From the NCBI GenBank assembly GCA_030704615.1, contig CM060731.1, forward strand, positions 41,788,001 to 41,852,000: a stretch of DNA of 64,000 bases. Direction: 5' to 3'. This DNA is from Takakia lepidozioides. Lineage: Eukaryota; Plantae; Bryophyta. Made by a program: the position numbers and the translations under genes. This document shows, piece after piece, positions 6,071 through 31,374 of the stretch. How positions within the stretch are numbered: the stretch's first letter is position 1; each line of letters starts with the position of its first letter. Below the pieces are notes generated by a model. The model ran no database searches and had not been told where the DNA came from. It was given only the letters and a program-made list of their open reading frames with translations.

Positions 6071-6365
6071 TAATCTGATAGGCATTCACCTTTTTGCCTC
6101 GGTTGTCCCACCATTGTCTGGGGTCAGAAAAATATTCATTCCACAACTTCTCCTCGTCTTTGTTACCTGTTTTTGGATATTTTCCTGTTGTCACATTGGC
6201 AGTATCATGTCAAAGTCATTCCAAACTATCCTAGATTCACTCAACCAGCTAACTTGCATAATTCAACATGAAAATTTAGGGCCGATTCTGATAGGAGGGG
6301 AAAACAGGGTGAAATGTGTTGCAGAAGGTGCCTTCATCAGCAGTGCCTGATTTTATCAATTGTGC
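6060..6365 (-). pseudogene. OSB-type PDF-motif (organellar ssDNA-binding) module joined to PPR repeats; related modules at ~4960-5345 and ~7050-7170
   Basis: EEKLWNEYFSDPRQWWDNRGKKVN resembles the PDF motif of plant OSB proteins (W..FF..P..WWDNR..K.N...PDFKH). Confidence 0.7.
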
Positions 6366-6389
6366 CGCTACTGCAATCTGAAGACAGTA

Positions 6390-6755
6390 TTCATTTTCTG
6401 ATACACTGTCCGGGGTTCTCTCATTGATAACAAGTACGTTGAAGGTTGCAATGACCAAAAGTGCTTCTAATAGAGTCCCACATCAATTCAATCTCAAAGA
6501 AGTTCATCCCTTGACTGGCTGGAGAGTGGTCTTACACATTGGTGATTCAATGGGGCGCTCTAGGAAGACAACCAAGGGCAAGGACTTCAACTATAGGTGA
6601 CCAAGTGCAGTGGACTCGTGAGAAATCCCAAACCCTAAACGTTCCATTGTGGACTATATCATAATGGACAATTTGTTCCCCCAGTGTGCCAATGTGTTGA
6701 TCGACAGAACTGATATTGGTACCTCTGACCACTTCCTGGTTTGGACTGAGATCAA
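6390..6755 (+). pseudogene. LINE APE-type endonuclease fragment
   Basis: Translates with frameshifts to RSIVDYII ... DIGTSDHFLVW (C-terminal SDH motif). Confidence 0.55.
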
Positions 6756-7622
6756 AAGAGAACCTCTTGTGTGTGCATACTTGTCTGTAGCCAGGTAACG
6801 ACGGATTGGTCAGTGAGAACCACCACGGTGCAGCTGAGCACGGCCTGCTTAGAACAAGCTGACTCTCCCAAGAACCTTGTAAACATCTGGAAGAATACCA
6901 AATCAGGTACTAACAGGAGGCAAGATCCCGTAATAGCAGGATGGAAAAAAATCTTCACATCGTACCTTAAGAAAACGCCACACCTTGCAATTGCAATTGT
7001 CCCACCATTGTCAATCTTCTAAAAACTCATGCCAGGTCTGCTCAGTGCTGCAAATTCAGGGCCGACTCTGTTGAGAGGGCAAGACAGGCTGAAATAGATC
7101 GAAGAAGAAGGTGCCCTCACCACATTGTCCTTGACCTTGTGTCATGACCCATGGAGGATTTGCCCTCCCATCAACCCAAAAGGATCGCTTCCCTAAACTC
7201 TCCCCTAAACCTTGTAAACATCAGGAAGAATACCATGCCCTGTGGAGAGGAGGGGAGAGGAGAGGAGGGAAAAGAGAAAGCCCGCAGAAGGGAAGGCGAA
7301 CGCGGGAGAGGAGTGGAAAGGAGATGAGAGGAGGACAGGGAAAAGAGAAAGCGGCGGGAGGGAAGGGGAGAAAGATCGCGGAGAGGAAAAAAAAAAAAAA
7401 AAACAAAAACAAAGAGATGATCCCGCGGTGCATCGCGGCCAAAACGTCACTCTTACCACTACACTACCCCTTAAAATACAACAACCCCCTCCTGTAAAAT
7501 TATATTTAAGGTGTTTTAAACCCCCCTCTGTATGTATAATGTTGTACATGGGGGGGGTTTAAAATACCCCCTCCTGTGCACGCACGTGGCTGGTACATTT
7601 AATGAGGAGTGCACCCCCCAGG

Positions 7623-7839
7623 GGCGAGAGAGGCCTCGTGAGGTTCGACTAGAAGAAGACGAGCCTGCCTATGTCTCACGTGGAGATAACCTCCCCACGT
7701 CCCAAGTGAGGTTCGCCACCTCACTTGGCACATGGAACCAAATGAAGTCCCAATGCCAACAAAATACAAATATAAATGTATAATGTCCTAATTAGCTAGA
7801 AATAACTATTTCTAACTAATCACAAACAAAACCATGACA
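7623..7839. repeat. Repeat B, second part
   Basis: Matches ~31158..31374 and ends ...AAAACCATGACA. Confidence 0.9.
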
Positions 7840-7841
7840 GC

Positions 7842-7926
7842 TGTCGTGCACCTAAGCATCGTGCCACAACATACATTGTTGTCCAACCACACTTCCTAGC
7901 ATATAGTCCTAGAAAGCCACGCCACA
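7842..7926. repeat. Repeat A (inner copy), preceded on the coding strand by a polypurine tract
   Basis: Near-identical to 1739..1823. The minus strand reads AGGGGGGCGAT-TGTGGC. Confidence 0.9.
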
Positions 7927-8183
7927 ATCGCCCCCCTAGCTGGTGATTAGGTCCCTCTAACACCGGATAGCTTGCAAGTATCCACCCCAATAAGATCATC
8001 GCTTGGTCTTCAATCGCACAAGTCCCAACACCTGAAGTTGATAGATCAAGAGGCCGGGTGCAAACGTAGCCCCATCGTTAGTCGCCTTCATGCAATCCAT
8101 GATCTTCAGTTGAGTATCCATGGCATTGAAGCCCCACTAGCTAGACCTTGGATCACTTGTCCGCCTCGCCACTGTCATGCCCA

Positions 8184-8417
8184 CTACCTCTGTTTAAGGC
8201 ATCGTGGACCTAACCATTCTCCGATAGAAACCTCCTCAAGTGGCGGTGTCAAGCATCCCATGTGCCACCCCCTTGAGCATTTGTCACACACTAACATGGT
8301 TGCAGCGCCACCAGCATGCCCACATAGCATGCAGCGCAACCCTGCATGTACCACTACAAAGTTGGGATCTATCCTCCCATCCACATGTGGAAGGTGACAT
8401 GGCGCATAATTGCGCAC
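8184..8417 (-). pseudogene. PHD finger at the C-terminus of the retroelement integrase
   Basis: CMLCG...MLVCDKCSRGWHMGCLTPPLEEVSIGEWLGPRC, a C4HC3 pattern with one Cys mutated to Gly. Confidence 0.85.
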
Positions 8418-8426
8418 ATGGTCCTT

Positions 8427-9929
8427 TCATACCATGCTATCTCGACCCTCCAGAATCAACACTCCTAAAGGCAACATCTCCCTGACCCTTAGAATCACAC
8501 GTCCTGCTGTGACATCCAAGGTCGTAGGCGCTGCTTGCTGCAAATACACATAGTCCCCAAGGTGGAAACGCCGAACACTTGGCCAATATCCCCCTTCACA
8601 TATAGTGGCGAATCTCAATGTGTCTCGGTATTGGACAATAGCAAGGTTCTCAAAAGCCATAGGCATGACTCTCTTGAACAACTCTGCCCGCTGGGCACAT
8701 GCTTGTGTCCACACATCCGGATCATCAAGGTTGAGAACTATTGCAGCCTCCCTGTGAATAGATGCAGGCAAATCCGGCTCTCGGCCAAAGATAAGAAAGT
8801 AAGGTGAGAATGAGGCAAGTGAAGCTTGTTTGCTGAACCTATAGCCCATAGCTAGCCAAACAAGCTGAAGGTCCCAATCTCCTAGGTGTCCGTTCTGCAA
8901 ACCGTACTTGCGTAAACCTCTCTTGACTGTCTGAACAACTCTCTCTGCCAAGCCATCAGCCTCGGGATGATCCCGAGAAGTAGTGCGGTGATCTATCAGG
9001 GCTTGCTCACACAAAGCCTGAAACTCCCCCAAGAACTCTCTCCCCTGGTCCGTGAGTACCTCGGCTGGAGCACCAAAATGGCTAAGCACTCGATCTAAGA
9101 ATGCATACGCAGCCCTCTCACTTGCCTTGTCAGGCAATGCCACCAGTTCAATCCATTTGGAAAAGTGTTCCACCATCACCATCACATACTTGTTATGACG
9201 AATCATCAATAACAATGGGCCTGCGAAGTCAAGACTCCAACAATAGCCCAAACCCATATTGGGTAAATGATGCAATTGTGGAGTAGGGGCGTTGAAAGAA
9301 GCCCGCACTCTATCACACACCATGCACCTTGCCACTAACTGTTGCTCATCCGTGTGCATGCCCCGCCACCAATATTGTCCTTGCAGCAAATTATGAGTGC
9401 GCTGCACCCAAAAATGTCCCAACTGCTCATGGGCATGGCGTATCAATCGCACTCGTTGTGTTGGATGAGACACAATCCTCACTCGTCCATTCTCCCATAC
9501 TCGGAGTAGGTGAGTCCTCTCCCACTTGAACCTCTTGGCTCGTTGTAGGACCCGATCCTTCTCCTTAGCAGTCACATTAGCTGCTGTCTCTCCGGTACGA
9601 AAGTATGCCAATACTGCTGCATCTTCATGCACATCCTTAGCACCGCCAAACTCCTCACTAGTCTCTGGATCGTCATGCACGCTATCTACATGACCAATCG
9701 CATGGGATGAACCAGTTTGAGCTCCCATTGCTAGAATGCATAAAAATGCCGATGCGTGCCATCCTTGCACCATCTCCTCATCCGTCTCACCATGCCACCG
9801 AACTCCAGTATCATCATGCTCGCTTGTGCATAGATTACGACTCAATCTTTCTGCATCCCGATTGACAATACCGGCTCGATGCACCACCTGGAAGTCGTAC
9901 TTTTTGAAGCATAAGTGCCCACCGTGCAA
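8427..9929 (-). pseudogene. Gypsy-type DDE integrase (HHCC + rve core)
   Basis: HEQLGH...CMVC, WSLDFAGP, VLTDQGREF, ADGLAERVVQT. Confidence 0.92.
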
Positions 9930-10401
9930 GCTTCTCTGTAAGCTTGTCTGACTCCATCAACCACTTCAATGGTTGGTGATCCGTGACAAGGGTGAAGAGA
10001 TTGTCATAGAGGTAGCATCTGAAATGTGCCACTGCCCATACCGCAGCTAGACACTCCCCTTCATAGGAACTATACTTCGCCTCGGCATCATTGTTCGAGC
10101 GGCTAACATATGCCACTACGAACTCTCTTCCCTCATCATCCATTTGTGTAAGCACTGCTCCAATCCCCAACATACTCCAATCCGTATGTAGTTGGAAAGG
10201 CCGCCCCCGAATAGGCCGCCTCAGAATAGGTGCAGAAGTCAATCGAGCCTTGAGTTCCTCAAAGGCTTCCTCCTGCTCCCCCTCCCGCTGCCACTCCTGA
10301 CCCACCTTGGTCAACTTGGTAAAAGCCTTTGCAATGTTGCTAAATCCCTTGACAAACCGTCGATAGTAGTTTGCCAATCCCATGAAAGCACGAAATCCAT
10401 G
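9835..10401 (-). pseudogene. RT thumb and RNase H of the DNMT-bearing retroelement
   Basis: RAFMGLANYYRRFVKGFS, FQLHTDWS, YEGECLAAVWAV, LVTDHQPL. Confidence 0.92.
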
Positions 10402-10767
10402 CCCAGGAGGTGCATTCTTCATAAAAAGACCATATCATGTGCGTGCAGCAACCAATAAACAATACCCCTGTATATAGCTTGATTCATGAATTTATCATAT
10501 GTATTCATATTTTTAAGACTTTATTAAAACCCCTAAAGTATTTATATAAAACAAACAATTAATGAATAACAATACCCTGCTGTATGTATTCATGTGTTGA
10601 TTGAGAATATAAAAACCCTTTAATTAGTTGAAGTAAAGTCGGGCTGTGGTCTCTACACACATTCTGCTGCTGCTTCTTCTTCCCCTTGCTGCACTTGGAG
10701 CTGCACATTTGGGTTTTCTTGTGGGGATCTGTTTGGGAGGGAAGGGAGGAGGAATTGAGGAGGAGAA

Positions 10768-13700
10768 ATGGGTGTGGAACGCAAGTCGGGAGTGATCGCT
10801 CTGTTTGACGTCGATGGCACGCTCACTCCTGCTCGAAAGGTGTGTGGAGGTCTCATGTTCTGCCTCAGAAGCAGATCCAAGTTCAAAAGGCAGCAAGCTC
10901 TTTGTTCTGTAAAGCATTTAAGTGTGGCATTTTTGGACGTGGGGTTTTGTCTCTGTTATGTTATGCTGCGTTTGTGTGCGTTGTAGCCTTATAGACGCGA
11001 TTTTTTCCTTCCTTTTACAAGAATCCGTTATATCTTACTCGCTGATTTAAAGGTTACTCATAAGTCTTTGTTATCATGAACTGCGTACCCGCCACCAGGG
11101 TGTCAGATTGATAGAGAACAAGAATTAATTTGTGCGCCAACACTGAATGTGGGATCTGTTGGATCTGTTGGATCTGTTAGGAAGCGTCACCTCAAATGCT
11201 CAAGTTTCTTCAAGTTCTACGCAAGGTATCACCCTCTTTTTCTCTATTTGTCAATTTCAATAGGAGTGTCTTCCTCAGATGATTCCCCACTGTTTAACAT
11301 CAATGCTCTGAGCGTTTGTGAATCCCAGTCTGCCCAGGGAGTATGTATACTGGCTATGGTGCTTTTCAGGAGAGGGAGTGAGGGATCAGGTTATGGGAGG
11401 GGCTGCCACAGCTGAGATGCGTTCAGAGAGCTCTCTGCATGGGCAATGTGGCCTCCATCCTGGGAATTTCCAAGAGAAAGAGTGAGAGGGGTTTTATGCC
11501 TTACAATACGATCTGGGTTGGAGAACAGAAAAGCCAGACTCGAAACACTTTTTGGGGTTAAGACGGAATAAATCCATACTTTGGTTGCATGCATAGGCAC
11601 ATGAAGTTGAACTACTGATAAAGCTTTGTTCTGTTGGAGACGGGTCCAGGTGGTAACAGTAGGTGTTGTGGGGGGATCCGACCTCATAAAAATTTCTGAA
11701 CAGCTTGGCAAAAATGGTCTCTCTCTCTCTCTCTCAATCCACAATTTTTGGCAGAAGTTTTCAGCTTTGATGACCCAAAAGGCCTGGCAGCCTACCTGCA
11801 TGATGCGCTTTGTCTTCGGGTATCCTTTGATGTATTCTGAAGTGGTTTCTTGTTGTTCTACTTTTTCTGGTGGGCCTTGGAGCCCCCTGTTGATGTGATC
11901 AAGTTTATCTCTTTCTTTATCTCTCTGTTACTTTTGAGACTAGCTGGAGTCAAGCTTATCTTGCAAATGGTGCATTGTTCACCGTGAGTGAGCTGTGGGA
12001 GTTCCATAGGACACTGAGCCAACTGAGACAGATTAGATCTAGTAGTGTGATGGCAAGTCATTACAGTAATGTTTAGAACACAGTTGCTGTCTCAAACCTT
12101 TATGTGTCAGAGCAGCTTTGGAACCAAATGTGGAGGTCGTTGCTCAAATATTGTGCTGACATGGATGCGTGGATGTGTGGCAGCTGTGTCAGAGTATGAT
12201 TATGTCTTCTCAGAGAATGGGCTTGTGGCTCACAAGAATGGGAAACTTATTGGCAATCAGGTCTGTTTGTGTCCCTCCTTTGGCCTTCACTTCATGTTCC
12301 CTTGAACTATTGCAGACCTATGGTACTGTCTGCAGGACAGATGATGAATGCATCTCTTGCTCACCTCTTGAAGACTACATTTGGGTGCTTTCATTTTAGA
12401 TATTGCGGTTTGTGATAGCTTGTGGAGCTGATTATCAAAAAAATTGTCTGCCTTCCTTTGATTCTGCAAGCTAGCTACCAAAGTCCTGATGCTGGAGGGG
12501 AAGATGGACTGTGTTGGGTGCAGAGCCTGAAGGCACATTTGGGTGAGGCAAAGCTCCAGGTAACTATTGCATCCGCCTTTGTTTGGTATTCTTCTAAGCT
12601 GTCATATCCTGCCTGCTTATATGAATGGTCATTGCCATAAACGCTCTGAACTTTGAACTGTCTACACAAGATAACATAAGCTGGAACTGGGGCTTGAAGT
12701 TGTACCAAACACACTTCGACTTGTGTGAGTCCTTGGAGGAAAGTTGTGTGCATCCACAGGTCTGGTTTGCTTGATAATCACAAGGGGTTCAATGCTGCAT
12801 ACCCAACAGAATTCTGTTCATGTAAGCTTTGAATATCATAAGTAACTGGATCATCTTTGCATAATAGACAGACAGTTTGTGATGGGCCCCTTCCAAGACA
12901 AAGCCGCAATACTGTTGTGAACCCCAGGGAAGTGGCAAATGTCCTATGCTGGTGTCTTGTTTCTTGATCTATAGGTTGACTGGTGTTTGGCTTCAATGGC
13001 ATTGTCCGATTATGCTTGGATGTGCACTGTGCCTGGCATGTATTTGAGTTTGAAGTAGACCTCAACCAGTTTTACATCAGGTTAATAACATGGGAAATGA
13101 TGGGGTCTTTTTTGTATGCCTTTTTGATGTGCAGGAGTTTATTAACTTTACACTTCACTACATTGCTGACCTGGATATTCCTATCAAGAGGTCAGTTTCC
13201 CAAAGTGGCAGATGTTGGAAGTAGTTGTCTGTTCTTGGCATATGCTTTCAAATCTCAAGGTTGTCTGTTCATAAGACTCCTAAGGCTTGGCAAGAAGTTA
13301 CAAATGTTGTGCATTAAATTCAATGTTCACCAACTCTAAAAAAAAAAAAAAAAAAAAAAAAAGGCTTCAAATCTAAAAAATGGACCATGAGAATGTGGCA
13401 CTCAAAAAATCAACCCTCCAAAAAAAAAAAAAAAACAAAAAACCTTTGTAGTAGTTGTAGTGCAGCCAAATGTAGATTTGAGATCATTGGCATCACGCAC
13501 CATTGATAGTATTTATATATGTGACCAAAGGGTCTGACCAGCAGTCAGGGAATGGATGTGATGGTCTTATCGTGTGGTGCTTGACAGAGGCACATTCATA
13601 GAGTTCCGAATGGGCATGCTCAATGTGTCCCCAATAGGCCGCAACTGCAGTCAAGAGGAGCGCGAAGAGTTTGAGCGCTACGACAAGGTAAACCAGCCAA

Positions 13701-15686
13701 AAGAAGAGAGAGGGAACCAAGACAACCTTCATGATGTCCACAGTGGCTCCAACAGGCCCATGTGAGAAAGTAGAACAACAAGAACACAAGTAAAGGGCCC
13801 ATGGGAAATAGTAGGACACGAAGAAACCACTTTAGGAAACATAAAGCGCCATCCAAATGCAGGTAGGCTGGCAGGCACTTGTTGCAAGACAGGAGAAAAA
13901 AAGTGATTAATTACTTCCCTGGTAGAGAGAGAGAGAAAAAAAAAATCTGCTGCCTGTGAAATCCATTGGTGATGTCTTCTTTGGGGCATGGTACTGTTGC
14001 GGACAACCTTGAAGAGAATGCAACTGAGTGTCATATGTTGTACATGCGGAACCAGCTGTGACAAGTGTAGCTTCGTTAAGGGTAACTCGTCGGCAAATGG
14101 TCTCTATTTTCCAAACACTAGAAGTAGGGCCTGAGCCATAGTTTGCAAGTGTCTAATGCCCTAGATAACTGTAAGCATGGCTCCCCCCTGAACCCAATCA
14201 GGATCCTTGAAAAGGTTACTTTGGTGCTAGTGAGACGATGTACTTCCCGCCGAGTCCTGGTATTACGTTAGTGCTATTTGCTAGAGAAAATTGGCGTCAG
14301 TACCTGTCTCTTCCTGTCTCTTCCAACCCCAAATTAGGTGATAGAATCATGCTAAACTGGTAATGCAGGTGCACTGTGTGAGGAAAACAATGGTGGGCGT
14401 ACTCAAGGACAAATTCAAGGACTTCAGTCTGACCTTCTCTATCGGTGGCCAGATAAGCTTTGATGTGAGTTGAGCTGTGCTTGTGTAAGATGTTAGATTT
14501 CTCTACTATCTCCTAGATTCCAGTAGCAGTGTATTTGGTAGATTGTGCAACAGTCTCTTGGTGCGTATGTTTGAGCAGGGGCATAACTTGCAGTTTTGTG
14601 GGGTACATCAGGTTTTCCCAAAAGGATGGGATAAAACCTTCTGCCTCCAGTTTGTTGAGAAAGAGTTCTCTGAGATTCACTTCTTCGGTGACAAAACCTA
14701 TGAGGTAGATTACCACTTCTCTGTATATCAAAGGTGAGGATGAGCGAGAGATGTACAGCATAAAATTGGGAGGGGAGGAGGAAGTGCAATAAGGGTGGTG
14801 GCAAACTAGACTTCAAAGGAAAAAATTTGGGTTCTGATACCTTGTGATTGCCTTGAATTGCTGGGTGGGTTCTTCTTGCTATTTTAGATGCTTACTGTCT
14901 TCTGCTATCCTCAATTGGGCCTGTTGGCACTTGTATATTTCTGGTTGATATTATTGTACTACTGTTTCTTTTCTTTTCCTGTGAGGTTTAGAGGCTGATT
15001 GCAGCGGCTATAAGTATCAGATAAGGGCACTGTGGCCACACTTAGGGTGGTCCTGGGCTTAAATATGTTTAGATCTATGTTGGTGGTTGCTTTATGTATG
15101 TATGAGGTCTTAGGAACTGGGCATTAACCCCAAATGTTTGTGAAAATGGAGATTGTCCCAACCCTTTGGCCATAAGGCCCTCCTTGTAGTGCTTATTGAA
15201 AACTAAGTTCTCCTGATGATTTGTTTGAGTCAACAGGGGGGAAATGATTATGAGATCTATGCGTCAGAGAAGACTATAGGCCATACTGGTAAGCATTCTG
15301 TACTTCCTTTTACAACAGAAGAACAGTTATGTAAGGCAATAGTGTTTTTGCGACAGCATTCTTTTCATAACCTGGCAAATTGCGAGTCCTCTGATTTCCA
15401 AACCTCCATCATCTCATTTGGTGCTGTAAGCCGTTTGTTATTTTTTCGGGTGCTGGGGTACTACACATTACCCAAGAATCTTATAAACCTGTCCCCGTTC
15501 TTTTCTAGTTTTTGCTTGGTCCTGGTTAAGCAACATACTACTACATTAATGGAGCCATGGCTAGAGTTGAGTCAGGGCATCCTGTTTTCATACTCTCTCT
15601 CGTTTCTGACGAGAGTAGAACCGGTTTGTGCAGTGACAAGCCCTGAAGACACCATCCAGCAATGCACAGACATTTTCTTATCTTAA
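10768..15686 (+). CDS. PMM: Phosphomannomutase (HAD-IIB), apparently intact, 11 exons, 248 aa
   Basis: Exons 10768-10839, 11181-11225, 11650-11716, 12184-12260, 12524-12559, 13135-13190, 13588-13687, 14369-14464, 14612-14704, 15237-15288, 15634-15686. All introns are GT-AG and phases are consistent (747 nt). Motifs [67 protein letters not shown]. Confidence 0.95.
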
Positions 15687-16139
15687 ATCATTTGCGCTAC
15701 AGAGAATCATGGAGCCTCAGCCTTCCCTTCTCTATGGAGGGTAACTGCTTGCAAGCAGTTTTTGGCATGTAGGAGTGCAGGCTTGTATCCTAACCTTCTT
15801 GTGTCCAGAAGGGTAGATAAAAACTTACTTAGAGATGGTCCTGTATTGTTACAGACTAGAATATAGCAAGAATCCATTCAATGGGCTGTATTCTTTGGGC
15901 TGCTCTCAGTTTTGTTTGGTAGGTGCCCTTATTAGAAAAGTGTTTCTTGAGGCATTACTGCTTTGGTAATTGCATTCAGTTACCACAATAAGGTTGAATT
16001 GAGGCATACGTTGTTGTGGTATAGGAGGCAGGTCGTATGCCAGTTTTTGATTGCATCACAAATGTAATCAGTACAATTTTACAGTGAATTCAATCATTTC
16101 TTTTTTAAAGAAAGGGGATGGAAGCGCTGAGTTTTTATA

Positions 16140-17262
16140 TCAGCCGGACAAAGGCCCAAGGAATACAAAGAGGAAAAAATAACCTCTATATTGGATGCCA
16201 TAGGGGCTGATCCAGGAAGGCAATGCTTCGTAATCAAAGACCTTAAGAAAAGCAGAGGAGGAAGCAGAATTCAGGGACAAAGCAGCAGTGAGAAGAGGAT
16301 CATCTTCAACAGAATACAGAGATCTAGTAACTACCACGCTTCCTCTTGTAAGGTTCATAAGAAAGCTGGGTTCTAGACCTAGTCTTCCTTAGAGCGACGG
16401 TGCCACCAATTGACCTCAGATTCTTCCCCATCTGCTGGTGAGTGCTTCACGCTAATGGAGCTCCCAGCTTGGTGGGATGGTGTCAACCCATTGAACTCAA
16501 TTCAATCATGATGTGAGAGTGAGGTCAAGTGGGGAAGTTTGATTTATCACATTCCTCTTTTTTTTTTCTTTCTAAAGGGAAACACCTAGGAGCAACAGCT
16601 CACAAATCAGGCCCCTTAATTATAGTGAGAGGAAAAAATAACCTCTTTCACAGGAGGAACCTGGCCGTTTTCACATCATTCTTTATACAAGTTGGATGCC
16701 TACTAGAGGATGTTAACAACCTAAATAGACAAGAAATGTTCACCAGAGAAGTCTGCAATGAGTACTGATGAAATTGGTTTTGATTTTGTAAGCAAATGAA
16801 TGACTGTTAGTGTCCCTCTTGGCATAGCCAGTATCTAACCGATTTGAGTAAAATCTTCTGGGAGACTCTTGATTTCCAGGGAGAAGCTTGGCATGGAGCA
16901 GTCTCCCTTAGGACTCCCACCAGCTCTGATGGATCAAACACTATGTATGATGCAAGCCCCTTCATTTCTGACATTGTGTCATCCATGTCCTCCTCTTCTG
17001 GAGTCTCTCTCACGCTACTTTGGATGGCGGGAGCTGAGCTGGCGGATGAACAATGCAAGGAAGTCGTGCGTTTGGATTGGAAAACTTCCCACAAACAGAG
17101 TTTGAAGCCTGCGGCCAAACGACAGCTTTCGGGGCAGTCTTCTGCGTCGCAAAACCAAGGAAGAGCGAAGAGAGAGAGAGAGGGGGGCGGAGAGAGGGGC
17201 GGGGGGGGGGGGGGGGTCTGGCAATTCTTGAGTGTTGTTACAACGAACTTAGCCACATTCAT
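16140..17262 (-). pseudogene. Possible captured, degenerate gene of unknown identity
   Basis: Protein-like minus-strand segments (16807-17262, 16140-16420) with a transit-peptide-like N-terminus. Family not recognised. Confidence 0.25.
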
Positions 17263-18091
17263 GGAGAAGAGAGAGAGGGATCGAGAGAGAGCGCGGAGAA
17301 GAGTGTGACGGATACTCCAGCGATTTCCTCACCAGACACCAGTTCCATATCCGGTGATAAATCCTGTATCTCAACACATGGCTCTTTTTGAACTTCGTGG
17401 CAAAGCTGCTGGAATGCTTAGAAACTCACAACGGTATATCCTAATAACTGAAAACAATAAACCTATGTCTAGTCTCCCAGCATATATGTTCACGGACCAG
17501 TTCTTCCTGATCTTGACTTTGTTGACATGTGTAGTTCACATATAATGCAGTTTAGAACGATGATCTCAGGCAAATAAATCCACCGAGAACGTCAAAATTC
17601 CCCGGAAAAATAACATCAGACTGGAGTATCTCACAAAGTTTGCTTCACGCGCGATGAAAAGATGTCATACTGGAGATAAAAATTAATATAAGACAATTCT
17701 GCGAGACTGATGGGGCCTTGAGCATTCAAGACAGTTCAGTATTCTACAAAACAGCAGGAAATGTGAAGTACTGTGTACATAACCCCAAACATTCAGCTCC
17801 ATGATCATTCTTTGGAAGTATAAATATGTAGCTTCCACATCTTTGTGGGAGCAGCAGTGGTATTTCTAGAGCAACGGTCCTCCCAAGGTAATAAATGGAA
17901 AAAGCTGTTGTGTTTAATGCTGTGCATAAGTACTTGGCGAATTTTTTTCCCTTACACGCAATGTGTGGAGTCTGATCTTTTGTAGCAAGATAGTATGTTC
18001 TGGTCTGGAATGGCATCAGGCTTCGAAACCGTTTATAAACCTGATGTGAACCTGGTGTGGTATAAAACCTGGTGTTTTTTTTAGTTTTCTA

Positions 18092-18340
18092 TGAAAGGAT
18101 TTCCCCATTCAGCTCTATGAATTAATTTTGATGAGCAATTCTTATGCAACTTCTCATGGTGACAAGGCCGATGGGCGAGATGAATCACTCCCTCCTCCTG
18201 GGAGAGACAGGCCAACCAACAGGCATAACGGGAGGGAGTTTTTTTTATCTTGATGCCCATGGGCCTTGTCACCATGAGAAGTTGCATAAGAATTGCTCAT
18301 CAAAATTTCACAAAGCTGAATGGGCTAATCCTTAAACTTT
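18092..18340. repeat. Long inverted repeat (fold-back), candidate hairpin RNA
   Basis: ATTTTGATGAGCAATTCTTATGCAACTTCTCATGGTGACAAGGCC (~18126-18169) pairs with its reverse complement at ~18261-18307. Pairing extends imperfectly outward; loop ~80-90 nt. Confidence 0.8.
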
Positions 18341-19199
18341 CATGGAACACTAGAATCGCTGGGGCAGAGCAACATAATCCAACAATGAGCTGGTACCTCC
18401 TGCTTAGTGTCACTATATCCACAAAGGGAATTTTTGAGCAAAGCTTTATGGTTCTTTTCAAGGGCCACTTTTTTCCTTGTTTGTTACTTTTCTTCTGTCC
18501 CATAAACTCTTTGAGCTTTCCTTGGGCCATATATAGTTTCTCTTTCTTTGCCACCTCAAATAGGTTCAATGCTCCACCAACAACTCATGAATTTCAATTG
18601 ACAGATCCAAATATTTGAGAAATGTTGAGGAAGGTATCTTCTCAAGAAGCTCGTTGTGTTTCAACCGAGTCTGTTTGTTTGTAATGAGTCTGTCTGATCA
18701 GATTAGTACACTGGCACGAGGTTTCCTGTGTTTCAACACATAATAGGGAGGTTCTTAGAGGTGTTGCGTCAAACAGCGTGACCGTGGAGAGAAATGAATT
18801 GAGATGGTACCGTAGAGAGAAAGACAGAAAACAACTTTTGCCCAAAATAGAACAAAGCACAAAAAAGTTGTGAATTCCAAATTTAGTCAAACTTGTTGAG
18901 ACGACATACGCACTGGAAGCGATTATCATTTGTGCTGATCGGAAATCTACGTTGGGGGCTTCCTTGTTAAAGTTGTTGGCGTAGGGAATAGCTGGAGATT
19001 GCGCCGCTGCATCACAGATTTGGAGAAGGAGTTTGCAGTTGGCAGCGAAAGCATAGTTTTGTTTGGAGCTGGGCAGTGAGAGTGCTCATGGTTTTGCTTG
19101 GAGCTGGCAGTGAGAGAGCATACTTCTGTTTGCAGCTGTCAATGAGAGCATGGTTTGTTTATACGATTTCATAGTATGGAGATATGTTGTTAGAGCTAT

Positions 19200-19848
19200 C
19201 ATGGAGTGCATGGATGCAAGCAAAGGGGTGTATCTGGTGGGCACCCGGATTTGGGAAGTGGGGAATAGGTATCGCATTCTATCTCGACTTGGCTCTGGAT
19301 CATACAGAGATGTTTGTAGAGCTTTGGATCTTGAACTCCACTAAGTGGTGGCTATCAAGAGGGTGGAGGATGTGTTTAGCTGCGGGCCAAACGGGAGTTG
19401 AGGGACGTTTGTATCCTCCAACATTTGGCCCATCCCAACGTTATCTCTTTCAAGGAGGTGTTCAGTGTCCACACAACGGGGCGCACCGACCTCTACATAG
19501 TTACTGAAGTCGCAAAATGGGGAGACCTTGCCGATCGTTTGGCTAATCAAGTCGAGCCTATGCCAGCGTTGTGCAATCTATCATCAAAGAGGTACTGCAA
19601 GCTGTTCTGTTCAGTACCTGCACTCTTGCAATGTGTGGCACATGGATATCAAGGCGGAGAACCTACTTTTTAAGGAAGGGCGAGTCCTACTGTGTGATTT
19701 TGGCCTATCCCGGGCTGCAGCTGCAGAGGGTGAGGCTACTTTCGAGCCTCCCAAAGTGATCATGCCCCAGGGGAAGTATACTTCAGCAATTGACATATGG
19801 TCAGTGGGATGCATCTTTGGGGAGTTCCTCCTCATGTATATATTTTAA
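19200..19848 (+). pseudogene. MAP kinase-like (CMGC) pseudogene with internal deletions
   Basis: LGSGSY, VAIKR, HPNVI, HMDIKAENLL, CDFGLSR, YTSAIDIWSVGCIFGE; contains stops and frameshifts. Confidence 0.8.
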
Positions 19849-20169
19849 TACAAAATTATGGACAAACTATAGATCGGATCTAAGAAAAATCAAAATAACT
19901 TGTGTAACCGATAAAAATTAGTATAAAATTTATTTTCCGTTTATAGAACTGTTAAAAACATGCTGAAATGTGTTGAGAAAGGTGCTTTCATTAGCAATGC
20001 CTTGTTTTATCAATTGTGCTACTGCCGCTATTGTTTCCACTTAGGCCAAAACAAGAAGTTTTTTTTTTTTTTAAAGGTGGGGGCCTCTCTCCCTCCCCCG
20101 TTTTCCTTGGCCTAAGTAGGGGGGAGAGAGACAGCAGTAGCAGCTGCTGCTCTCTCCCTGCTTAGGCAA

Positions 20170-22430
20170 ACAAAATGATAAAAAAAACAATAATAGTAAT
20201 AACAGATCTCGTTGCTCCCACATTTGACATACATGTTGACGTGGGTACTGTTCAGAATGACACCTGATATAACCCTAGCTTTGACAACATCACCATGGAC
20301 CTCTTTGCCTTTTTCAAGGGCTGCTTGCATGGTTGCTCATGCATTATAAACACAAATGAACATGATCTGGTCCAACTTCAAGCCTTCCTGCATCATTTGC
20401 TCAAAGGTCTCTATGTCAAAGTCTTCATGTCGCACCCCTCCTATGCATATCCTGCATTCATCACGTTCCACAACACCATATCTCGTTCAGCCATATTGTC
20501 AAAACACTGCATCTGGTTAAACCACCTTGCTGCACCCGCTCTTAAATTACATGTCCACCAAAGTAGGGTTCAGAATGACAGCTGATACAATTCCAGTTCT
20601 TACGATGTCACCATGGACTTCTTTGCCCTTTTCGAAAGGGTATCAGGAGAGAAAGAACTCCCGCTCTCTCTCTCTCTCTCCCCTTTAAGCTCCCGACGCG
20701 ATGAATTCGAGGTCAAATGGTGGGGTCAGCTGCAATGTATGACTAATACCCGGTATCCTAAGTTAATCGACTCTATATCTTGGAAGCAGGACTGCCCAGT
20801 AGATTTCAAATAGTTTGGATTCTAATTTAATGTCCCGGTAGCTATATAAACTATTCTAAGTGTCAAATTGTTGTACAAGGAAAAACAAGCTCATGTGAAA
20901 TGTGATGGGACATACAGCTTGTTGTTAGGTGTTGGTAAAATGCAGGGAGAACATTCTGCTGCTCAAATGGATCCCACCTGCCAGCTGCAACATAGATATT
21001 TGATAGCAACACATAAGTCGCGGCATCCTGTTCATTCGACGTGAGGATAGATATTGCCGCACATTCAGCCATCTCCACATTGCCATGGATTCTGCAAGCA
21101 CCAAGCAAGGCCTTCCACCCCATAACATCTGGATTGATGGCATTTTATTAATCAGGTCCACTGCCTCATCCAGTTGTCCCGCACATCCAAGAAGGTCTAC
21201 CATGCAGCCAAAGTGCTTTACTGTCAGAGTGACACCATGATCTTGACTAAGGGAATCGAAGTAGTGTCTTCCTTCATCCAGTAGGCCAATGTGGCTGCAT
21301 GCAGAGAGAACACATATAAAGGTGATACTGCCCGACTTCAAACCGTTCTTTTGCATTCCTTCAAATAGTTGCAGGACCTCCCTATGACAACCATGCTGGG
21401 CATATCATGCAATCATCGCGTTCCACGACACCACATTTCGTTTAGCCTGCATATTGTCAAATACTCCCTTTGCATCCTCAATGCACCCACATTTTGCATA
21501 CATGTCCACCAGGGCAGTGTCCAGAATGACATTTGGTACAATTCCAGCTTTGATGATGTCACCGTGCACCTCTTTGCCCTTTTCCAAGGCTGCCAGACTT
21601 GCACAATCATTGCAAACGCACACAAACGTGATGTGGTTGTGCTTCACCCCTTCCCCCATCATTTGCTCATAGGTCTCCAAGGCCTCCATCAGTGCCCCTG
21701 CTATGCATATCCTGCAAGCATGTCGTTCCATAACACCAAATCTTGTTCCACCTTGAACACTCACTCCACATCCCCAATGCCCCAATGCTCCCACATTTGG
21801 CATACATGTCCACAAGGGGAGTGTCCAAATCACATCTGGTACAATTTCAGATTGACATGCAACCATAGACCTCTTTGCCCTTTTCCAGGGCTGCCAGACT
21901 TGCACACAAACGTTATGTGGTCAGGCTTTACCCCTTCTCCCATCATTTTCTCGTAGGTCTCCAAAGCCTTCATCCCATGCCCCTGCCGTGCACATCCTGC
22001 AAGCATCGCGCGTTCCATAACACCATATCTCGTCCAGCCATAGTGTTGAACATTCCCTCCGCACCCTCAATGCTCCCACATTTGGCATACATGTCCACGA
22101 GGGTATTGTTCAGAATCAATTCTGATACAATTCCAGCTTTTGCGATGCAACTATGCACCTCGTTGCCCTTTTCTAGGGCTGTCAGGCTTGCACACGGACT
22201 GCAAACGCACACAAACATGATGTGGTCGGGCTTCACCCCTTCCCCCATCATTTGCTCATAGGTCTCCAAAGCCTCCATCCCGCGCCCCTGCTGTGCATAC
22301 CCTGCAAGCATCGCACTCCACGACACCACAACTCATTTAGCCATAGTGTTGAACACTTCCTTTGAATTCTCAAAGCACCCACATTTGACATACATGTCCA
22401 CCAGGGCAGTGTTCAAAACGACATCTGGTA
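20170..22430 (-). pseudogene. PLS-class PPR relics including an E domain
   Basis: PPR motifs as in element 1. HFGCMVDLLG..GQLDEA, WKALLGACRIHGNV and ATYVLLSNIY (20863-21356). Frameshifted. Confidence 0.88.
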
Positions 22431-24460
22431 ATCTGACAGGCATTCACCTCTTTCCCTCGGTTGTCCCACCATTGACTGGGGTCAGAAAAATACTCACTCC
22501 ACAACTTCTCCTCATCTCTGCTACCTGTTTCTGGATACTTTCCTGTTGTCACATTGGCAGTATCATGTCAAAGCCACTCCAAACTAACTCAACCAGCTAA
22601 CTTGCAGAATTCAACATGAAAATTTGGGGCCGATCTGATAAAAAGGAAAAACAGGCTGAACGGTGTTGAAGAAGGTGCCTTGATTAGTAGTGCCTTATTT
22701 TATAAATTGTGCCGCTGCTGCTGCTGCGGCTTCCAGTTGACCATCTACCCATGCAGGTATCTTATATCCTTCCACAGGAATCATATGTAATCTGGAGCTT
22801 GAAATCCGGTCTTCTTGGATGAATCTGGACCCACACTCTATCCCTGTTCTTTCAGGTATCCATGCCCCTGCACGAATCATGCCTACATCCTTGCCTTGCT
22901 GCTAGCAGCTGATAATGATAGCCTATAATTCTTCCAGCAAACCCCCCAACCATACTTCTCACGCTAGTTTCTATGCTGACTTGCGTCTGCTTCCAACAAA
23001 CATTCACCTTAAATTGCCTCGATTGTTCCACCATTGGCTGGGGTCGGAAACGTGTTCATTCCAGAGCTTCTCCTCGGCTCCATTATCTGTTTTTTGATAC
23101 TTTCCTGTTGCCACATTGCCAGTAACATGTCAAAATCACTCCAAAACCACCATAGAGACGAGCTAACTTGCAAAATTCAGCACGAAAATTTTGGGACGAC
23201 TTTGATAACAGGGAAAAACAGGCTGAAATGTGTTGAAGAAGGTGCCTTCATTATACTCAATTGTGCTGTTGCCGCTGCTGTTTCCAGCTGACCATCTACC
23301 CACACAGATTTCTTGTAGCTATTGATCCACAGGGAATCAGAAGTAATCTTGTGATTGAAATCCAACCCCCTAGGATGAATGTGGACCTCTATCCCTGGTC
23401 CTTCAGCCAGCTAACTTGCAAATTTCAGCATGGAAATTTAGGGCCGATTCTGATAAGAGGGAAAAACAGGGTGAAATGTGTTGAAGAAGGTGCCTTCATT
23501 AGCAATGCCTGATTTTATCCATTGTGCCGCTGCTACTGTGGCTTCCAGTTGACCATATGTCTTCCACAGGGAATCATAGGTAATGTGGAGCTTGAAATCC
23601 GGCCCTCTTGGATAAATTTGGGCCCACATTCTATCTCTGCTAGCAGCTGAAGCAGCTGACACTGATGGCATGAAGTTCTTCCAGAAAACACCCTAACCCT
23701 ACCTATAGTAACATGTCAAAAACACTCCAAAACCACCATAGATCCACCCAACGAGCTAACTTACAGAAATCAATATGCATCTCAAGGCCGAGTCTGATGA
23801 GAAGGTAAAACAGGCAGAAATAGGTTGAAGAAGAAGGTGCCTCACCACATTGTCCTTGACCTTGTGTCATGACCCATGGAGGATTTGACCAAACATCAAC
23901 CCAAAAATGACCTCTTGCGTGTGCTGCTTGTGTCTGCAGCATTCAGAATGACATCTGGTAATCTGACAGGCATTCACCTTTTTGTCTCGTTTGTCCCACC
24001 ATTGGCTGGGGTCAGAAAAGTATTCATCCCACAACTTCTCCTCATCTCTGTTACCTGTTTTTGGATACTTTCCTGTTGTCACATTGGCAGTATCATATCA
24101 AAGTCACTCCAAACTACCAAAGGTTCACTCAACCAGCTAACTTGCACAATTCAACATGGAAATTTAGGGCCAATTTTGATAAGAGGGGAAAATAGGGTGA
24201 AATGTGTTGAAGAAGGTGTCTTCTCCTCACCTATGTTATCTGTTTTTGGATACTTTCCTGCTGCCACATCGGCAGTAATTTGTCAAAGTCACTCCTAACC
24301 ACCACAGATCCACCCAACGAGCTAAAGTAAAAAATTCAATATGCATCTCAGGGCCGAGTCTGATGAGAGGGCAAAACATGCTGAAATAGGTCAAAAGAAG
24401 AAGCTGCCCTCACCACATTGTCCTTGACCTTGTGTCATGACCCATGGAGGATTTGACCGA
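22430..24460 (-). pseudogene. Array of degenerate OSB-type PDF-motif modules upstream of the PPR repeats
   Basis: WWDNR/WWDKR at ~22460-22475 and ~23985-24000, RGPDFKLHITYDSLW, DFNHKITSDSLW...WVDGQL. Homologous to 4960-7170. Confidence 0.7.
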
Positions 24461-24878
24461 CCATCATCTCTTGTGTGTGCTGCTTGTACTGTACCCTCCC
24501 AAGAACCTGGTAAACATAAGGAAGAATACGCACAAGAGCCAAGCGCGCGTAGCAGAAGTGAGAGCGGCAGCGAGTACCAACATGAGCCAAGAGCACGCAG
24601 CAGAAGTGGGAGAAGGTCCGCGCAGCGGATGATAGGAGGCGGAAAAAAAACCAACGCAAAAGGATTTGAGCACGCGATGTCGCGGTGGATAAGTGGAGAC
24701 CTTACCAGTATGCTACATACAAACATACGTAACTTACCCCCAAATATATATATATATATATATATTAGGAATTCTTCAGCCCCTTTCTATATACATAGTA
24801 TGTATGTGGGGGTATTAAATTACCCCCATTCTGTTCATGCACGTGATAGGTACATTAAACCTTGGTGCACCCCCCAGG

Positions 24879-25075
24879 CATCCATGGGACGTGGAATGCA
24901 TGCAATGGCCTCCACCTTTGTCTATTGAACACCCAATCCTCCAGGGTATATCATGTGGCCCAGATACTCATTCTGATTGTGGAAGAACTTGCACTTTCCG
25001 GGGTGCAGTTTCAACCCGTACGCTCTCCAGCGCTCAAACACCACCTGAAGGTGTCTCTCATGCTCCTCACATGAA
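24879..25075 (-). pseudogene. Reverse transcriptase fragment
   Basis: EEHERHLQVVFERWRAYGLKLHPGKCKFF...YLGHMI...KVEAI; the N-terminal RT core is deleted. Confidence 0.88.
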
Positions 25076-25129
25076 TTACGATTTATTAATTTAAAATAGT
25101 TACCCCTGGCTGAGAGTCTGAGATCCTGC

Positions 25130-25672
25130 TTACCACAATCGCGGTCGATGCGCGCGTGATCCCACCGCTGCTGCATCCAATAGCACCGCCGATCCAATCC
25201 AAGACCACACCTGATGCACACTGGCCATTACCCTGGCCCGAGAATCCCCCATAAGAGGAACATTCTCTAGGATATAGCCTAGAGGTTGCACTTGCCTTGT
25301 CTGCAAGTCCCGCAACACTCGCAACATCTCCCAAAACAAATACGATCGTGCATCATGCAAGCCATTCCCATGACCTGCGGGAGAGTGTCATTAGCAAGGC
25401 CATCCGGCTATCATGGCCAAGTCAATGGAACCATGCCGGTCCAAATCATTCGCCCCCAGCAAGGTAATGTCTGCTGGCAAGGCCTTTTGATACCCTTGAA
25501 TTGCTGAGAGAGACAACAATTCAGGATATTGGTGTGTGAACAAGGCGATGTGGCGCATAGAAATACGCCAAGCTATTTCATCCTTCTCCACATACAAGTA
25601 CTTGCGTACTTTAATCCTTGCTTGCAACCCTCCTGCAAGCCCAGTGCTCATGCCTCCAAACAGGTCTAGCAA
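25130..25672 (-). pseudogene. C5 cytosine DNA methyltransferase domain inside pol
   Basis: One frame contains LDLFGG (motif I), YVEKD (II), DIT (III), AGWPC**HSPAG (IV, two nonsense codons where QG is expected), YILENV (VI) and AHRPRLW (VIII). Motifs IX/X are lost in a deletion. Confidence 0.9.
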
Positions 25673-26102
25673 ACATCAGGTGGTTGCCAGATAATGGGCA
25701 CTGTGTCCAAAGGAGCTAACTCAGGAGGTCCAGGTGATGTCACTGAACTCCCCTCACTCATCAATGGAAAGACCTCCTGCCATGCTTGATGCACACACTC
25801 GTCTGCTACTCGATGCAAATTCCCAACCGTACCCCACAGTAGAATATGCACAGGCACATGAGGAAGCAAATCAGCATTGTATGCATATTGTTTGTCCTCA
25901 TCAGGTGATGGCCTATCATCTGCATGGCTATTGCCCTCCAAGAGCTCACCACCCCAAGCCACCACCCCTAAGTGGGCATCATGTTCCTATGATCCACCGC
26001 TACATTCACAATAAACCGCACTGGGAGCAGTGCACGTCGGTCATCTCTTGACTGCCACTCCGGCCTATAGGATGTCGTTTCCTCCCAAAAGTCCAAAGTA
26101 AA

Positions 26103-27185
26103 TCATATGGGGTACAACACAGCCCCACCAACAAGCACATCATAGAACATCGCGTCTGTAACAATGGCTTTAGCTCTCATGACTGAGTCGTCCGTAGGAT
26201 GATCCGGCTGCAATCGAATGAAGAACCCAAGGCGTGTAATCCCTCGTGCCTTCTCTGAACCGCCCAAAGATGTTTGAATTTGGAAATGGCAAGGCTCCAA
26301 ATCCGCCTCTGTAAGGCCCAAGCCTGCAATTGCTGCTCTTCCCAACATCAATGGTTGTGCTCCCAAGTCCAACAAGACCCGCAGTGGCCTATACCTCCTC
26401 CCGGCTGGGCCACCCAACTGAAACACACTATCCTGATTGTCCACAAGGACTACCCCAGGAGTCACCATACTACGCTCAATGGTTGGTCTAGCTGGCAACT
26501 CCTGCAACCTTGCAGCTGCCGCTTGCCATGGTGTAGCTGTGGCTGTCTTCACCCTTGAGTCCAAGGCATCCATGCACTGCACATTATCTGTTATTTCCGC
26601 AGATAGTGCCGATGCATCACCACTCTCACAGAGTTTAGCTGCTAATCTGAACACAACAGCTGGCCGAATCCCCGGCATTGTAATTGTCATTGCAGAAAAT
26701 AATGGAGCTTGACAAACCACCGTAGCCGCCCCCAACAATGTACTAGCTGCACCTTGCTTTGCAGCACCACCCAGTGGCATTTCCCGAGCCACACCAACTC
26801 TCCCTACTGGCACTCGTGGCTCTACCTCTGACACACTTGGGCGAGCGGGTACCATCGATGGCATAGTTGGCACTGTCTCAGCCAATGTAAAGGACTGTGG
26901 AAGCTTTGTCTGACGACTTGCTTCCCTCCTTTGTGGATCAAAATCCACATCCGCTCCTCTTGGCTCAGGAGCACGAGTTGCTACTCGAGTGATAGCAGCT
27001 GCAGAGTCCACATGCAATGGTTCTGCAAGTGCGGCTTCACACATGAAGCCCATACCAATCTGGTCTTCCCTAGGCATATGAGGTTGTGCAGGTGGGGCTT
27101 GAACCTCAGGCCTTGGAGCTGGCGCAACATGAGTAGTGGCCATGGTAGCAAGACGTTGCTCTAGCTGGGCAAGCCTATCCACCAT
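26103..27185 (-). pseudogene. Gag-pol linker and aspartic protease
   Basis: RVLLDLGAQPL (degenerate D-S/T-G) and YDVLVGGAVL. Confidence 0.7.
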
Positions 27186-27265
27186 GCATTGGTCATGACC
27201 TTGACTTTGACATTGTGCTCATTGGTTTTGGTTATGACCTCCACCGTGACCTCTGCCTCTCTGGG

Positions 27266-28563
27266 CTACATTGCCTCGTCCTCGGCCACCATTGTTCCCT
27301 TGGAACTGATCTGGCCGTAGCTCAGGATGCAAGTCATAACAATGGGCCTCCTCATGCCCATACTTGCCACAATGCCCACACTGTAGTTATGTAGGCTGTG
27401 CCTATACCGGCCCTTTGCCTCTCTCCGGGAAATCTCTCTTAACATGGGGTCCTCCACAATCCCAACATGTTACACCTGACTGTTGTTGGTCTGAGAATAA
27501 AGGAAGTGACCTCTGCAATTGAGATCCACTCTGTCCTTCCCTGGGCTTCGTCTGAGCCCCCTTGTTGCCTTGAGCACGTTGGGGTAGTGGTTGTTGTTGG
27601 CTAGGAGCCCCACTTCGTTGTGTCTCCTTACCAAATCCCACCATGACCACTCACTCCTCCACCATATTGAGCTCTATCCGCTCTGCCAGCAAAAACACGT
27701 TTGCTAAGGTGGATTGGTCCACTTGTAGGAGAGTTGCATCCCGCACCCTTCTCCTCAGCTCCTTGTCCAATATCCCATACCAGAATTGGACTGCTTGAGC
27801 TTCCGTAACTCCTTGGGTTACATTTATCAATCGCCTCATGTGCGTGTAAGTCTTCCTCAAACTCTCAGTAGGCTTGCGCTGGAACTCTTGCAAGCTTTGC
27901 AATTTCTCCGTCCTTATCCCCTGGTAGTTTCTCCTCAACTCCTCGAAGAACTCCAGAACTGGGTTAAAGACAGGCACTGGTGCTGGTGCTGCAGCAGGAG
28001 CTTGAGTGGATTTCCCATCTCCATCTTTATTTGTCCCACTACTAGTGCTTGCAGTTGGGGATGTTGGTGTAGCTGCTGGTGTCGCCGCTGCCCTTGTGCT
28101 TCTACTGATGGAGATATAGTCAGGTGACCAATATTGTCGCCACTCCTCAATCTCCACCTCATTTCCCCGCCTAAACTCATGGTAGTCATCCATAGGCGGC
28201 CCCTCAAGGTGCTGAAAACAGCCCCTTCCACGCCATAAAAGGTGTAAACAGTTGTGGATTGCGCATCTGCTGCAAATCACATCAACTATCAAACTCCTGT
28301 ATGAAATCATCAAGCTTGATGATGCCCACAGCTCCCGAGTACCGACGTGGCCCCTTGGTAGCTCCATACATTTCCTCCATCGTATCCCACAATAATGGCA
28401 CGGAAATGGCTTGCACTCTCGGCAAGAATCCTCCATACTGTGAGTGTGAACCTTCTTCAGAAAACACTGAAGGTGAAGGTAGCCTAAACTGCACACCTCG
28501 TCTTGTATATCCACTAGTATCGCTGGTGCTCGTACCGGCACTCTCCTCAGCAACTGGTGGCAT
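27266..28563 (-). pseudogene. Gag (capsid-like region plus degenerate zinc knuckles)
   Basis: KLDDFIQEFD, FFEELRRNYQG...EFQRKPTESLRKTYTHMRRL, CWDCGGPH; frameshifted. Confidence 0.7.
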
Positions 28564-29339
28564 CTCCGTGATGAAAACTCACACTCAAACCGGCTATCAA
28601 CCTGTCTCTAAGCCCCCTTTCCACAAAGTAACCGGGTAGAGAACCGGTTGCGGCTTATGGTTTGGAATACTAGGTTTCTATTCTGAACCTGCATCCACCG
28701 CAGACACTCATATGGTCTGCTGGTCATCAACCCAGCCTCACCATAAGAGAAACAATGATGGTCTGCTGGTCATCACCCCAGCCTCACCACCGACAGCACG
28801 CTCTAGGATTGGCCGGCCACAATATTTCCGGCACAACCACCTATAAAAGCAAGCGCCCAAACCAAACTAGCATGGCGCACAGTCAAGCATACATTTGTGG
28901 GAGGAGGATCCAAACACAGGAAACTCAAACAACTACACCGCCCACAGCTTAAATCAATCGATCTGCTTGCGGCTTCAATAAACCTGCAAGATGGCCAAGT
29001 CTCTATCCAAACTAGCTTTGCCTCCGCTTACGGAAAAGCTTTGGCCTACAAGAATGATGGAAGACTATAGAGAAGGGAAGCTAAAGCAATCTCTACGCCC
29101 ATAATGCTCTCATCCCATTGCTCCCCCTATCTTCACACTCATTCTTGCTTAAGCAATAGATAAGACTATCCTTAAATAACCTCTCAAATAACTCTCAAGA
29201 GCCCTCAAATTATTGCCATGAACTTCTGAAATCTGCCCTCAATCAGCCCCTAACATAGACCCACCGAGGTTCAAGAAGTTCGTAAACTTGGACTCTAAAC
29301 AGTCCACCAAAATGCCCTAGGCGCCCGCCAATTAGTGGC

Positions 29340-31032: not shown

Positions 31033-31374
31033 TGATACAGAAATGGTGAAAAGAGGAGAAACCACTCTATCACGTATATAAGCCAATGGCACCTGTGCTA
31101 AAGGACTCCACCATACAGACCTCACCCACTCTCCATCTCAAGTACTAGAAATATGGGGACGAGAGAGGTCTCGGGAGGCTCGACTAGTAGAAGACGAGCC
31201 TGCCTACGTCTCATGTGGAGATAACCTCCCCACGTTCCAAGTGAGGTTTACCACCTCACTTGGCACATGGAACCAAATGAAGTCCCAATGCCAACAAAAT
31301 ACAAATATAAATGTATAATGTCTTAATTAGCTAGAAATAACTATTTCTAACTAATCACAAACAAAACCATGACA
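31033..31374. repeat. Repeat B (5' terminal copy, 342 bp, TG...CA)
   Basis: Matches the joined 1843..1981 + 7631..7839. No repeat A adjacent and no TGG-type PBS follows it. Confidence 0.9.

Follow-up and report, generated by a model that had tools for sequence, protein, structure and literature searches.

Can a transposon carry a complete housekeeping gene with all its introns, and is a gene carried in this way likely to remain in use? The question is raised by a stretch of 64,000 nt from the moss Takakia lepidozioides (GenBank assembly GCA_030704615.1, contig CM060731.1, positions 41,788,001 to 41,852,000 of the forward strand), referred to below as the window; all coordinates are counted from its first letter. 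Between positions 10402 and 24878 lies an element of 14,477 bp with terminal inverted repeats (TIRs), here called E2, and inside it a complete gene for phosphomannomutase (PMM). With a probability that we put at roughly four in five, E2 is a non-autonomous Pack-type TIR transposon that carries a native moss PMM gene and was inserted into a long terminal repeat (LTR) retroelement, in the linker between its reverse transcriptase (RT) and RNase H.

Ends and family of the element

E2 starts with CCCAGGAGGTGCAT at 10402, ends with GTGCACCCCCCAGG at 24878 and is flanked by two copies of a target site duplication (TSD), aatccatg at 10394–10401 and catccatg at 24879–24886, which match at 7 of 8 positions (computed chance probability ∼4e-4). 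Taken alone, its two ends form a weak inverted repeat, with 10/14 identical positions at the tip and 28/46 further in. The family to which these ends belong became apparent from a sister element, E1 (1982–7622), which lies 2.8 kb away in the same orientation and in the same retroelement, where it splits the left LTR. E1 has CCTGGGGGGGTGCAC at its start and GTGCACCCCCCAGG at its end (TIR match 14/15), and a perfect 8-bp TSD, GGCGAGAG, at 1974–1981 and 7623–7630; extension of this TSD to 9 bp fails. Similarity between the left and right ends of E1 amounts to 36/47 and 51/79, becoming weaker farther in.

About 75 nt can be aligned across all four termini of E1 and E2. The left TIR of E2 with its subterminal region (10402–10609, plus strand) has a degraded tip, CCCAGGAGGTGCAT versus CCTGGGGGGTGCAC in the family; it is 69% identical to E1 1987–2171 over 190 bp (E-value 4e-11). 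The right TIR with its subterminal region (24681–24878, minus strand) has the intact tip CCTGGGGGGTGCAC and an exact 14-mer in common with the right end of E1. An nhmmer profile built from the ends of E1 only found the right end of E2 at 24878–24691 (E-value 9.4e-12), with model position 1 exactly at 24878, and the left end at 10406–10599 (E-value 2.5e-10); no further site in the 64-kb window, E1 itself excepted, scored better than 1e-3. This leave-one-out profile rules out a chance origin of the TIR and TSD match in E2. Given the four homologous termini and the hits of the E1-only profile, E2 truly belongs to a TIR family with TSDs of 8 bp, and its boundaries at 10402 and 24878 are right. An earlier reading made from the letters alone, below called the sequence-only reading, had proposed TIR-like ends with a 7/8 TSD at these very positions, and both the sister element and the profile bear it out. 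That reading also saw no transposase in E2; we likewise detected no transposase domain by Pfam in the open reading frames (ORFs) and segments tested from E1, E2 and the rest of the window.

E2 looks older than E1, because its TIRs are more degraded (28/46 versus 36/47) and its TSD matches at 7/8 rather than 8/8 positions. The TIR sequence matches no family that could be named. A metagenome scan for the TIR pattern returned eight stretches, seven of them on high-GC bacterial contigs and one on a 33%-GC contig with no further similarity; all were taken as chance.

Insertion into a retroelement

Outside the two TSD copies we observed the halves of one retroelement, both on the minus strand. Its 3′ part (7631–10401) has an LTR piece (7631–7840), an integrase ORF (8427–9929, Pfam) and an RNase H ORF from 9835; the Pfam RT_RNaseH match covers 9835–10422, with the ORF extending 21 nt into E2. 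Its 5′ part (24879–31374) has the C-terminal end of RT at 24922–25221 (RVT_1 in Pfam, profile positions 161–205 of 205, i.e. the last 45), a DNA methyltransferase-like piece (25130–25672), gag-like ORFs and an LTR (31033–31374). Read across E2 on the minus strand, the order of pol is RT end, RNase H, integrase. With E1 and one TSD copy taken out, 1843–1981 plus 7631–7839 align without interruption to 31033–31374 (92.5% identity over 348 bp), and both LTRs have TG...CA termini. The host is thus one Ty3/gypsy-like LTR retroelement of ∼9.4 kb that received two insertions of this TIR family, E1 in its LTR and E2 in the RT–RNase H linker. The sequence-only reading had E2 splitting the RT itself; the insertion into pol stands, but the site is outside the RT catalytic core. 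Divergence of the LTR pair corresponds to ∼3.0% per lineage since the retroelement inserted.

Two further observations concern the host. An 88-bp block is present in two copies with 98.9% identity, at 1738–1825 and 7841–7928, on both sides of the left LTR (an X-LTR-X arrangement), and 17 nt of the LTR start are repeated at 1826–1842; such an arrangement is suggestive of a junction formed by tandem or recombinant retroelements. The piece at 25130–25672, in the pol region upstream of the RT remnant, has motifs resembling those of cytosine-5 DNA methyltransferases (FGG, PC, ENV), with a weak Pfam DNA_methylase match (E-value 0.004, below the curated cut-off).

A complete PMM gene of moss origin

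The PMM gene occupies 10768–15686 on the plus strand. Exon blocks were located by tblastn with PMM proteins, and the boundaries were then inspected for splice sites. The resulting model has 11 exons: 10768–10839, 11181–11225, 11650–11716, 12184–12260, 12524–12559, 13135–13190, 13588–13687, 14369–14464, 14612–14704, 15237–15288 and 15634–15686, all on the plus strand. All ten introns are GT–AG (20 canonical splice sites), and the coding sequence (CDS) of 747 nt, free of internal stops, encodes 248 aa, so that the 11-exon gene without lesions reported from the letters alone is confirmed as complete. The predicted protein covers the full-length domain of eukaryotic phosphomannomutases (PF03332, HAD superfamily), with the nucleophile motif DVDGT (DxDxT) at residue 14 and the GDK...GGND motif across exons 9–10. 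A Pfam PMM match falls on the exon 10 ORF; the ORF at 15216–15686, which comprises exon 10, intron 10 and exon 11, had no match in the protein collection.

Relatives were collected with a profile made from six well-aligned exons and two scaffold proteins, which returned PMMs of mosses, liverworts and ferns; in this profile search of the protein collection no protein was identical to the model. Nearest to it is the protein of a moss transcript (JGI sample; 87% identity), followed by those of Sphagnum (84%), Riccia (83%) and Ceratodon (82%). A maximum-likelihood tree places the gene within the moss clade, with support of 95/91 and a terminal branch of 0.084 versus a median of 0.091. The PMM locus of Sphagnum has the same eleven exon blocks. 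Since all introns are retained and the exon blocks correspond, uptake was by way of genomic DNA and not RNA: the gene is a native moss gene with its ancestral structure and all 10 introns, not a retrocopy.

Homology to the transposon family ends at 10589–10609 and the ATG is at 10768, hence just ∼160–180 bp of native upstream sequence was taken along; a TATAAAA sequence is located upstream of the ATG, at ∼10610. On the other side ∼3.4 kb of downstream DNA accompanies it. The PMM loci of Sphagnum and Ceratodon have no neighbours common to each other or to the other cargo of E2; because the neighbours differ even between these two mosses, synteny is uninformative at this distance. Nevertheless, a gene within a transposon that is itself nested in a retroelement cannot be at an ancestral syntenic position. 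The position of PMM in E2 is therefore not ancestral, and the circumstance that the sequence-only reading named as fatal to its proposal, PMM at a syntenic ancestral site, does not hold.

Introns 3 and 7 contain an inverted pair of ∼100-bp sequences (11782–11877 and 13754–13876), 78–95% complementary, that bracket exons 4–7. They may be two small transposable element (TE) insertions in opposite orientation, and could fold in the pre-mRNA.

The family backbone and the remaining cargo

Comparison of the two elements separates what belongs to the family from what belongs to E2. Shared regions are the left 190 bp (69% identity), a block of decayed pentatricopeptide repeats (PPR) and the right end. 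The backbone common to both (E2 19954–24529, minus strand), which contains decayed PLS-type PPR repeats detected by Pfam and upstream repeat units, is collinear with E1 2937–7233 at 70–91% identity. According to this homology map the block at 10590–19950 (9.4 kb) is present in E2 only; it holds PMM, domain-free DNA and a kinase fragment. PMM, Pkinase and PPR are the only domains found in E2.

The same decayed PPR block lies beside the right end in both elements, with ∼81% identity over the longest shared stretch (∼1 kb), which indicates that the PPR cargo predates the split of E1 and E2 and travels with the family. In E2 the PPR pieces are in several frames with short ORFs, the longest of 166 aa. 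A PPR expansion has been reported for Takakia lepidozioides (PMC13120521).

Downstream of PMM, anonymous DNA specific to E2 (15687–19149) has no homology in E1, and 40 stop-to-stop segments (≥45 aa) from 15690–19160 contained no Pfam domain. Within it, at 18095–18333, 239 bp form a near-perfect hairpin whose 53-nt core arms match at 98%; it looks like a miniature inverted-repeat transposable element or a hairpin-RNA locus. Next follows a broken intronless fragment of a CMGC-type (MAPK/CDK-like) kinase (19150–19848, plus strand) in three frames. It matches Pkinase profile positions 47–191 only, with positions 47–92 and 109–191 in different frames, and its best PDB matches are MAPK and CDK. The fragment could be a relic of the transposon lineage itself and not captured host DNA. 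Derivation from an intact kinase ORF at 46790 in the same window was considered and rejected, as the two proved unrelated by comparison. The earlier statement that all cargo other than PMM is decayed agrees with the partial kinase in three frames and the short PPR frames described here.

Selection or youth

The coding sequence of PMM gives no sign of relaxed constraint, as far as comparison with its relatives can tell. PMM is on average 77.7% identical to eleven non-moss PMMs, within the range of the eight other moss sequences (76.0–78.6%). Among 130 columns invariant in the other 19 sequences PMM deviates at one; ten control sequences deviate at 0–2. A dN/dS value, which the sequence-only reading had suggested as a check, is 0.036 against the moss transcript, with dS saturated and the figure reflecting mostly history before the capture.

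With at most one deviation, neutral drift of PMM is limited to ∼1.5% per site (95% upper bound), whereas the ∼3.0% per lineage derived from the LTRs would predict ∼9 deviations. It would follow from these two figures that PMM either entered less than about half the age of the retroelement ago, or is constrained. The age of the transposon bears on this choice: E2 is apparently older than E1 and its PMM is without excess change, which mildly favours constraint. The intact frame, on the other hand, is weak evidence of selection, because the older retroelement itself keeps ORFs of 500, 360 and 300 aa. The sequence-only reading had a functional gene carried by a giant Pack-like element and kept there by selection. 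Its first part is well supported, as capture or relocation of PMM at the DNA level by a Pack-type element; selection goes further than the conservation test, which rules out only long neutral drift. We consider the odds to be about even that this PMM is functional and still in use; otherwise it would be a fairly young redundant duplicate.

The observed/expected ratio of CpG is 0.27 in the PMM introns (10840–15633) and 0.50 in the CDS, with 0.40–0.58 in the surrounding TE sequence. The low value hints at heavy methylation over the PMM gene body in the past.

Alternative explanations

Several observations weigh against the interpretation of E2 as a transposon that brought PMM into pol. The left tip of E2 deviates from the family consensus at 4/14 positions, and the two TSD copies differ at one. 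Removal of one TSD copy leaves the RT and RNase H frames 1 nt out of register, with a stop 14 codons upstream; the frame offset and the stop imply that this copy of the host was, or became, defective, and a seamless empty site cannot be shown. The 500-aa ORF kept by the older and presumably neutral retroelement makes intactness of PMM less telling, and a search of E2 for degenerate internal copies of the family ends found none, which leaves a fusion of neighbouring elements without a direct trace. One could suspect an assembly chimera, in which family ends or other repeats led to false joins and PMM lies physically outside the retroelement, the more so as the region is a dense repeat nest. A chimera, though, needs two false joins that by chance produced matching TSDs, correctly oriented ends and collinear pol halves, and the ends shared by E1 and E2, ∼200 bp with 69–78% identity, have neither the length nor the similarity to confuse a long-read assembler; we regard it as very improbable. 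Somewhat less remote, still unlikely, is a history in which E2 arrived in a form similar to E1 and the 9.4-kb PMM block was added later in place, for instance as templated filler DNA of double-strand break repair or by segmental duplication, without ever being carried by the transposon. No other PMM-bearing copy of the family is known, and the edges of the cargo at ∼10590–10609 and ∼19950 have no recognisable signature either way. Against such an addition speak the place of the block, which fits precisely between left subterminal region and family backbone, where Pack-type elements have their cargo, and its edges, which have no TSD, TIR or repeat; besides, a block inserted later would still be non-ancestral at this site.

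The strongest competitor accepts both transposon and position and differs only in the status of the gene: PMM would be a recent, silenced copy of a canonical PMM at another locus, redundant with it and intact merely through shortness of time. We see it as a real possibility, falling somewhat short of an even chance. Intactness does not discriminate here, given the long frames of the older host, and neutral drift is limited only to below ∼1.5% per site. In addition, PMM sits within a CpG-depleted TE nest, with the ratios of 0.27 for introns and 0.50 for CDS given above, and just ∼160–180 bp of native upstream DNA accompanies it. What speaks for use of the gene is that E2 looks older than E1, yet its PMM shows no surplus of changes at invariant sites, and its splice sites (20 of 20) are canonical. 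A Pack-type transposon with a captured native PMM gene, whether or not the gene is still in use, is the interpretation that we retain.

Possible route of capture

The family backbone is composed of the 190-bp left end, the decayed PPR block and the right end; E2 alone has an additional 9.4 kb, between the left subterminal region and the PPR block. Two routes by which it was gained can be envisaged, and no trace of either was detected in E2. Two family ends lying close to each other and flanking a PMM locus could have been used as one element (macrotransposition, or neighbour fusion); alternatively, template switching during gap repair could have acquired the PMM block. By either route the composite element with the PMM block would then have transposed to its present site. 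The pair E1/E2 demonstrates that the family inserts locally and in the same orientation, and mobilisation of neighbouring, like-oriented insertions of one family has been connected with acquisition of DNA (Gisby and Catoni 2022, PMC8903248). One could go further and speculate that the copy in E2 is the plant's only working PMM, relocated by macrotransposition into the pol of a retrotransposon and run from a promoter at the subterminal edge of the transposon, inside methylation-prone TE chromatin; we hold this to be rather doubtful.

Relation to known elements

Pack-type elements normally hold gene fragments only. E2 resembles them in having TIRs shared within a family, a TSD of the family length, no transposase domain and an interior derived from host genes and partly broken (PPR, kinase). 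A like-oriented family member also lies nearby, the configuration tied to acquisition of cargo in Pack-TYPE elements (Pack-MULE, Pack-hAT, Pack-CACTA; PMC8903248). Unlike these elements, E2 has among its cargo an entire gene, its 11 exons forming an intact frame, together with 3.4 kb of DNA from downstream of it; its size of 14.5 kb, a TIR of no named family and a bryophyte host also set it apart. In the Ac/Ds macrotransposons of maize (hAT), reportedly described by Huang and Dooner in 2008, the TSD is 8 bp as well, intact host genes can be moved between two element ends, and transposition to nearby sites is typical, which fits the 2.8 kb between E1 and E2. In contrast, E2 has no internal element ends and no hAT transposase has been linked to its family.

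With respect to superfamily, hAT elements have an 8-bp TSD, short TIRs with a YARNG tip and a transposase with a BED finger, a DDE domain and a hAT dimerisation domain. Both E1 and E2 have the 8-bp TSD; the tip CCTGGGGGGTGCAC (CCTGG) departs from the usual YARNG, and the inverted similarity extends over ∼45–75 nt. MULEs have TSDs of 9–11 bp, usually 9, and TIRs of ∼100 bp or more; the TSD of 8 bp in both E1 and E2 differs from this.

The term macrotransposon itself is also used in PMC3260210. Looking beyond TIR elements, the intact cytidine deaminase borne by a maize Helitron (PMC1657028) is likewise a complete host gene carried by a DNA transposon; Helitrons, though, have neither TIRs nor TSD and move by a rolling-circle mechanism, whereas E2 has both. 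The Starships of fungi, giant cargo elements (PMC11162782), are mobile units with functional-looking genes of host type, comparable to E2 in this respect; unlike E2, which is a small and passive TIR element, they possess their own recombinase and are at least 10 times larger.

Other features of the window

Beside the TE nest we observed two long ORFs that look like intact host genes: an intronless protein kinase ORF of 617 aa (46790–48643) and an ORF of 626 aa (49948–51828) with a GIL1/IRKI C-terminal domain. A tandem array at 58800–61730 consists of at least 13 units of 216 bp with 81–94% identity, and has long overlapping ORFs on both strands.

Implications

Pack-type elements are known for shuffling gene fragments, and a whole multi-exon housekeeping gene in a passive TIR element is unusual for the class. 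The window includes a natural control, namely a PMM-free sister element 2.8 kb away together with a dated LTR host. If a donor locus of PMM exists, the pair would date the capture and document its mechanism. If it is true that this copy is the sole PMM, an essential gene would be living in nested transposons, a situation that bears on the escape of genes from TE silencing. Should E2 prove a clean case, it would mean that in bryophytes elements of this type are able to copy or move whole functional genes.

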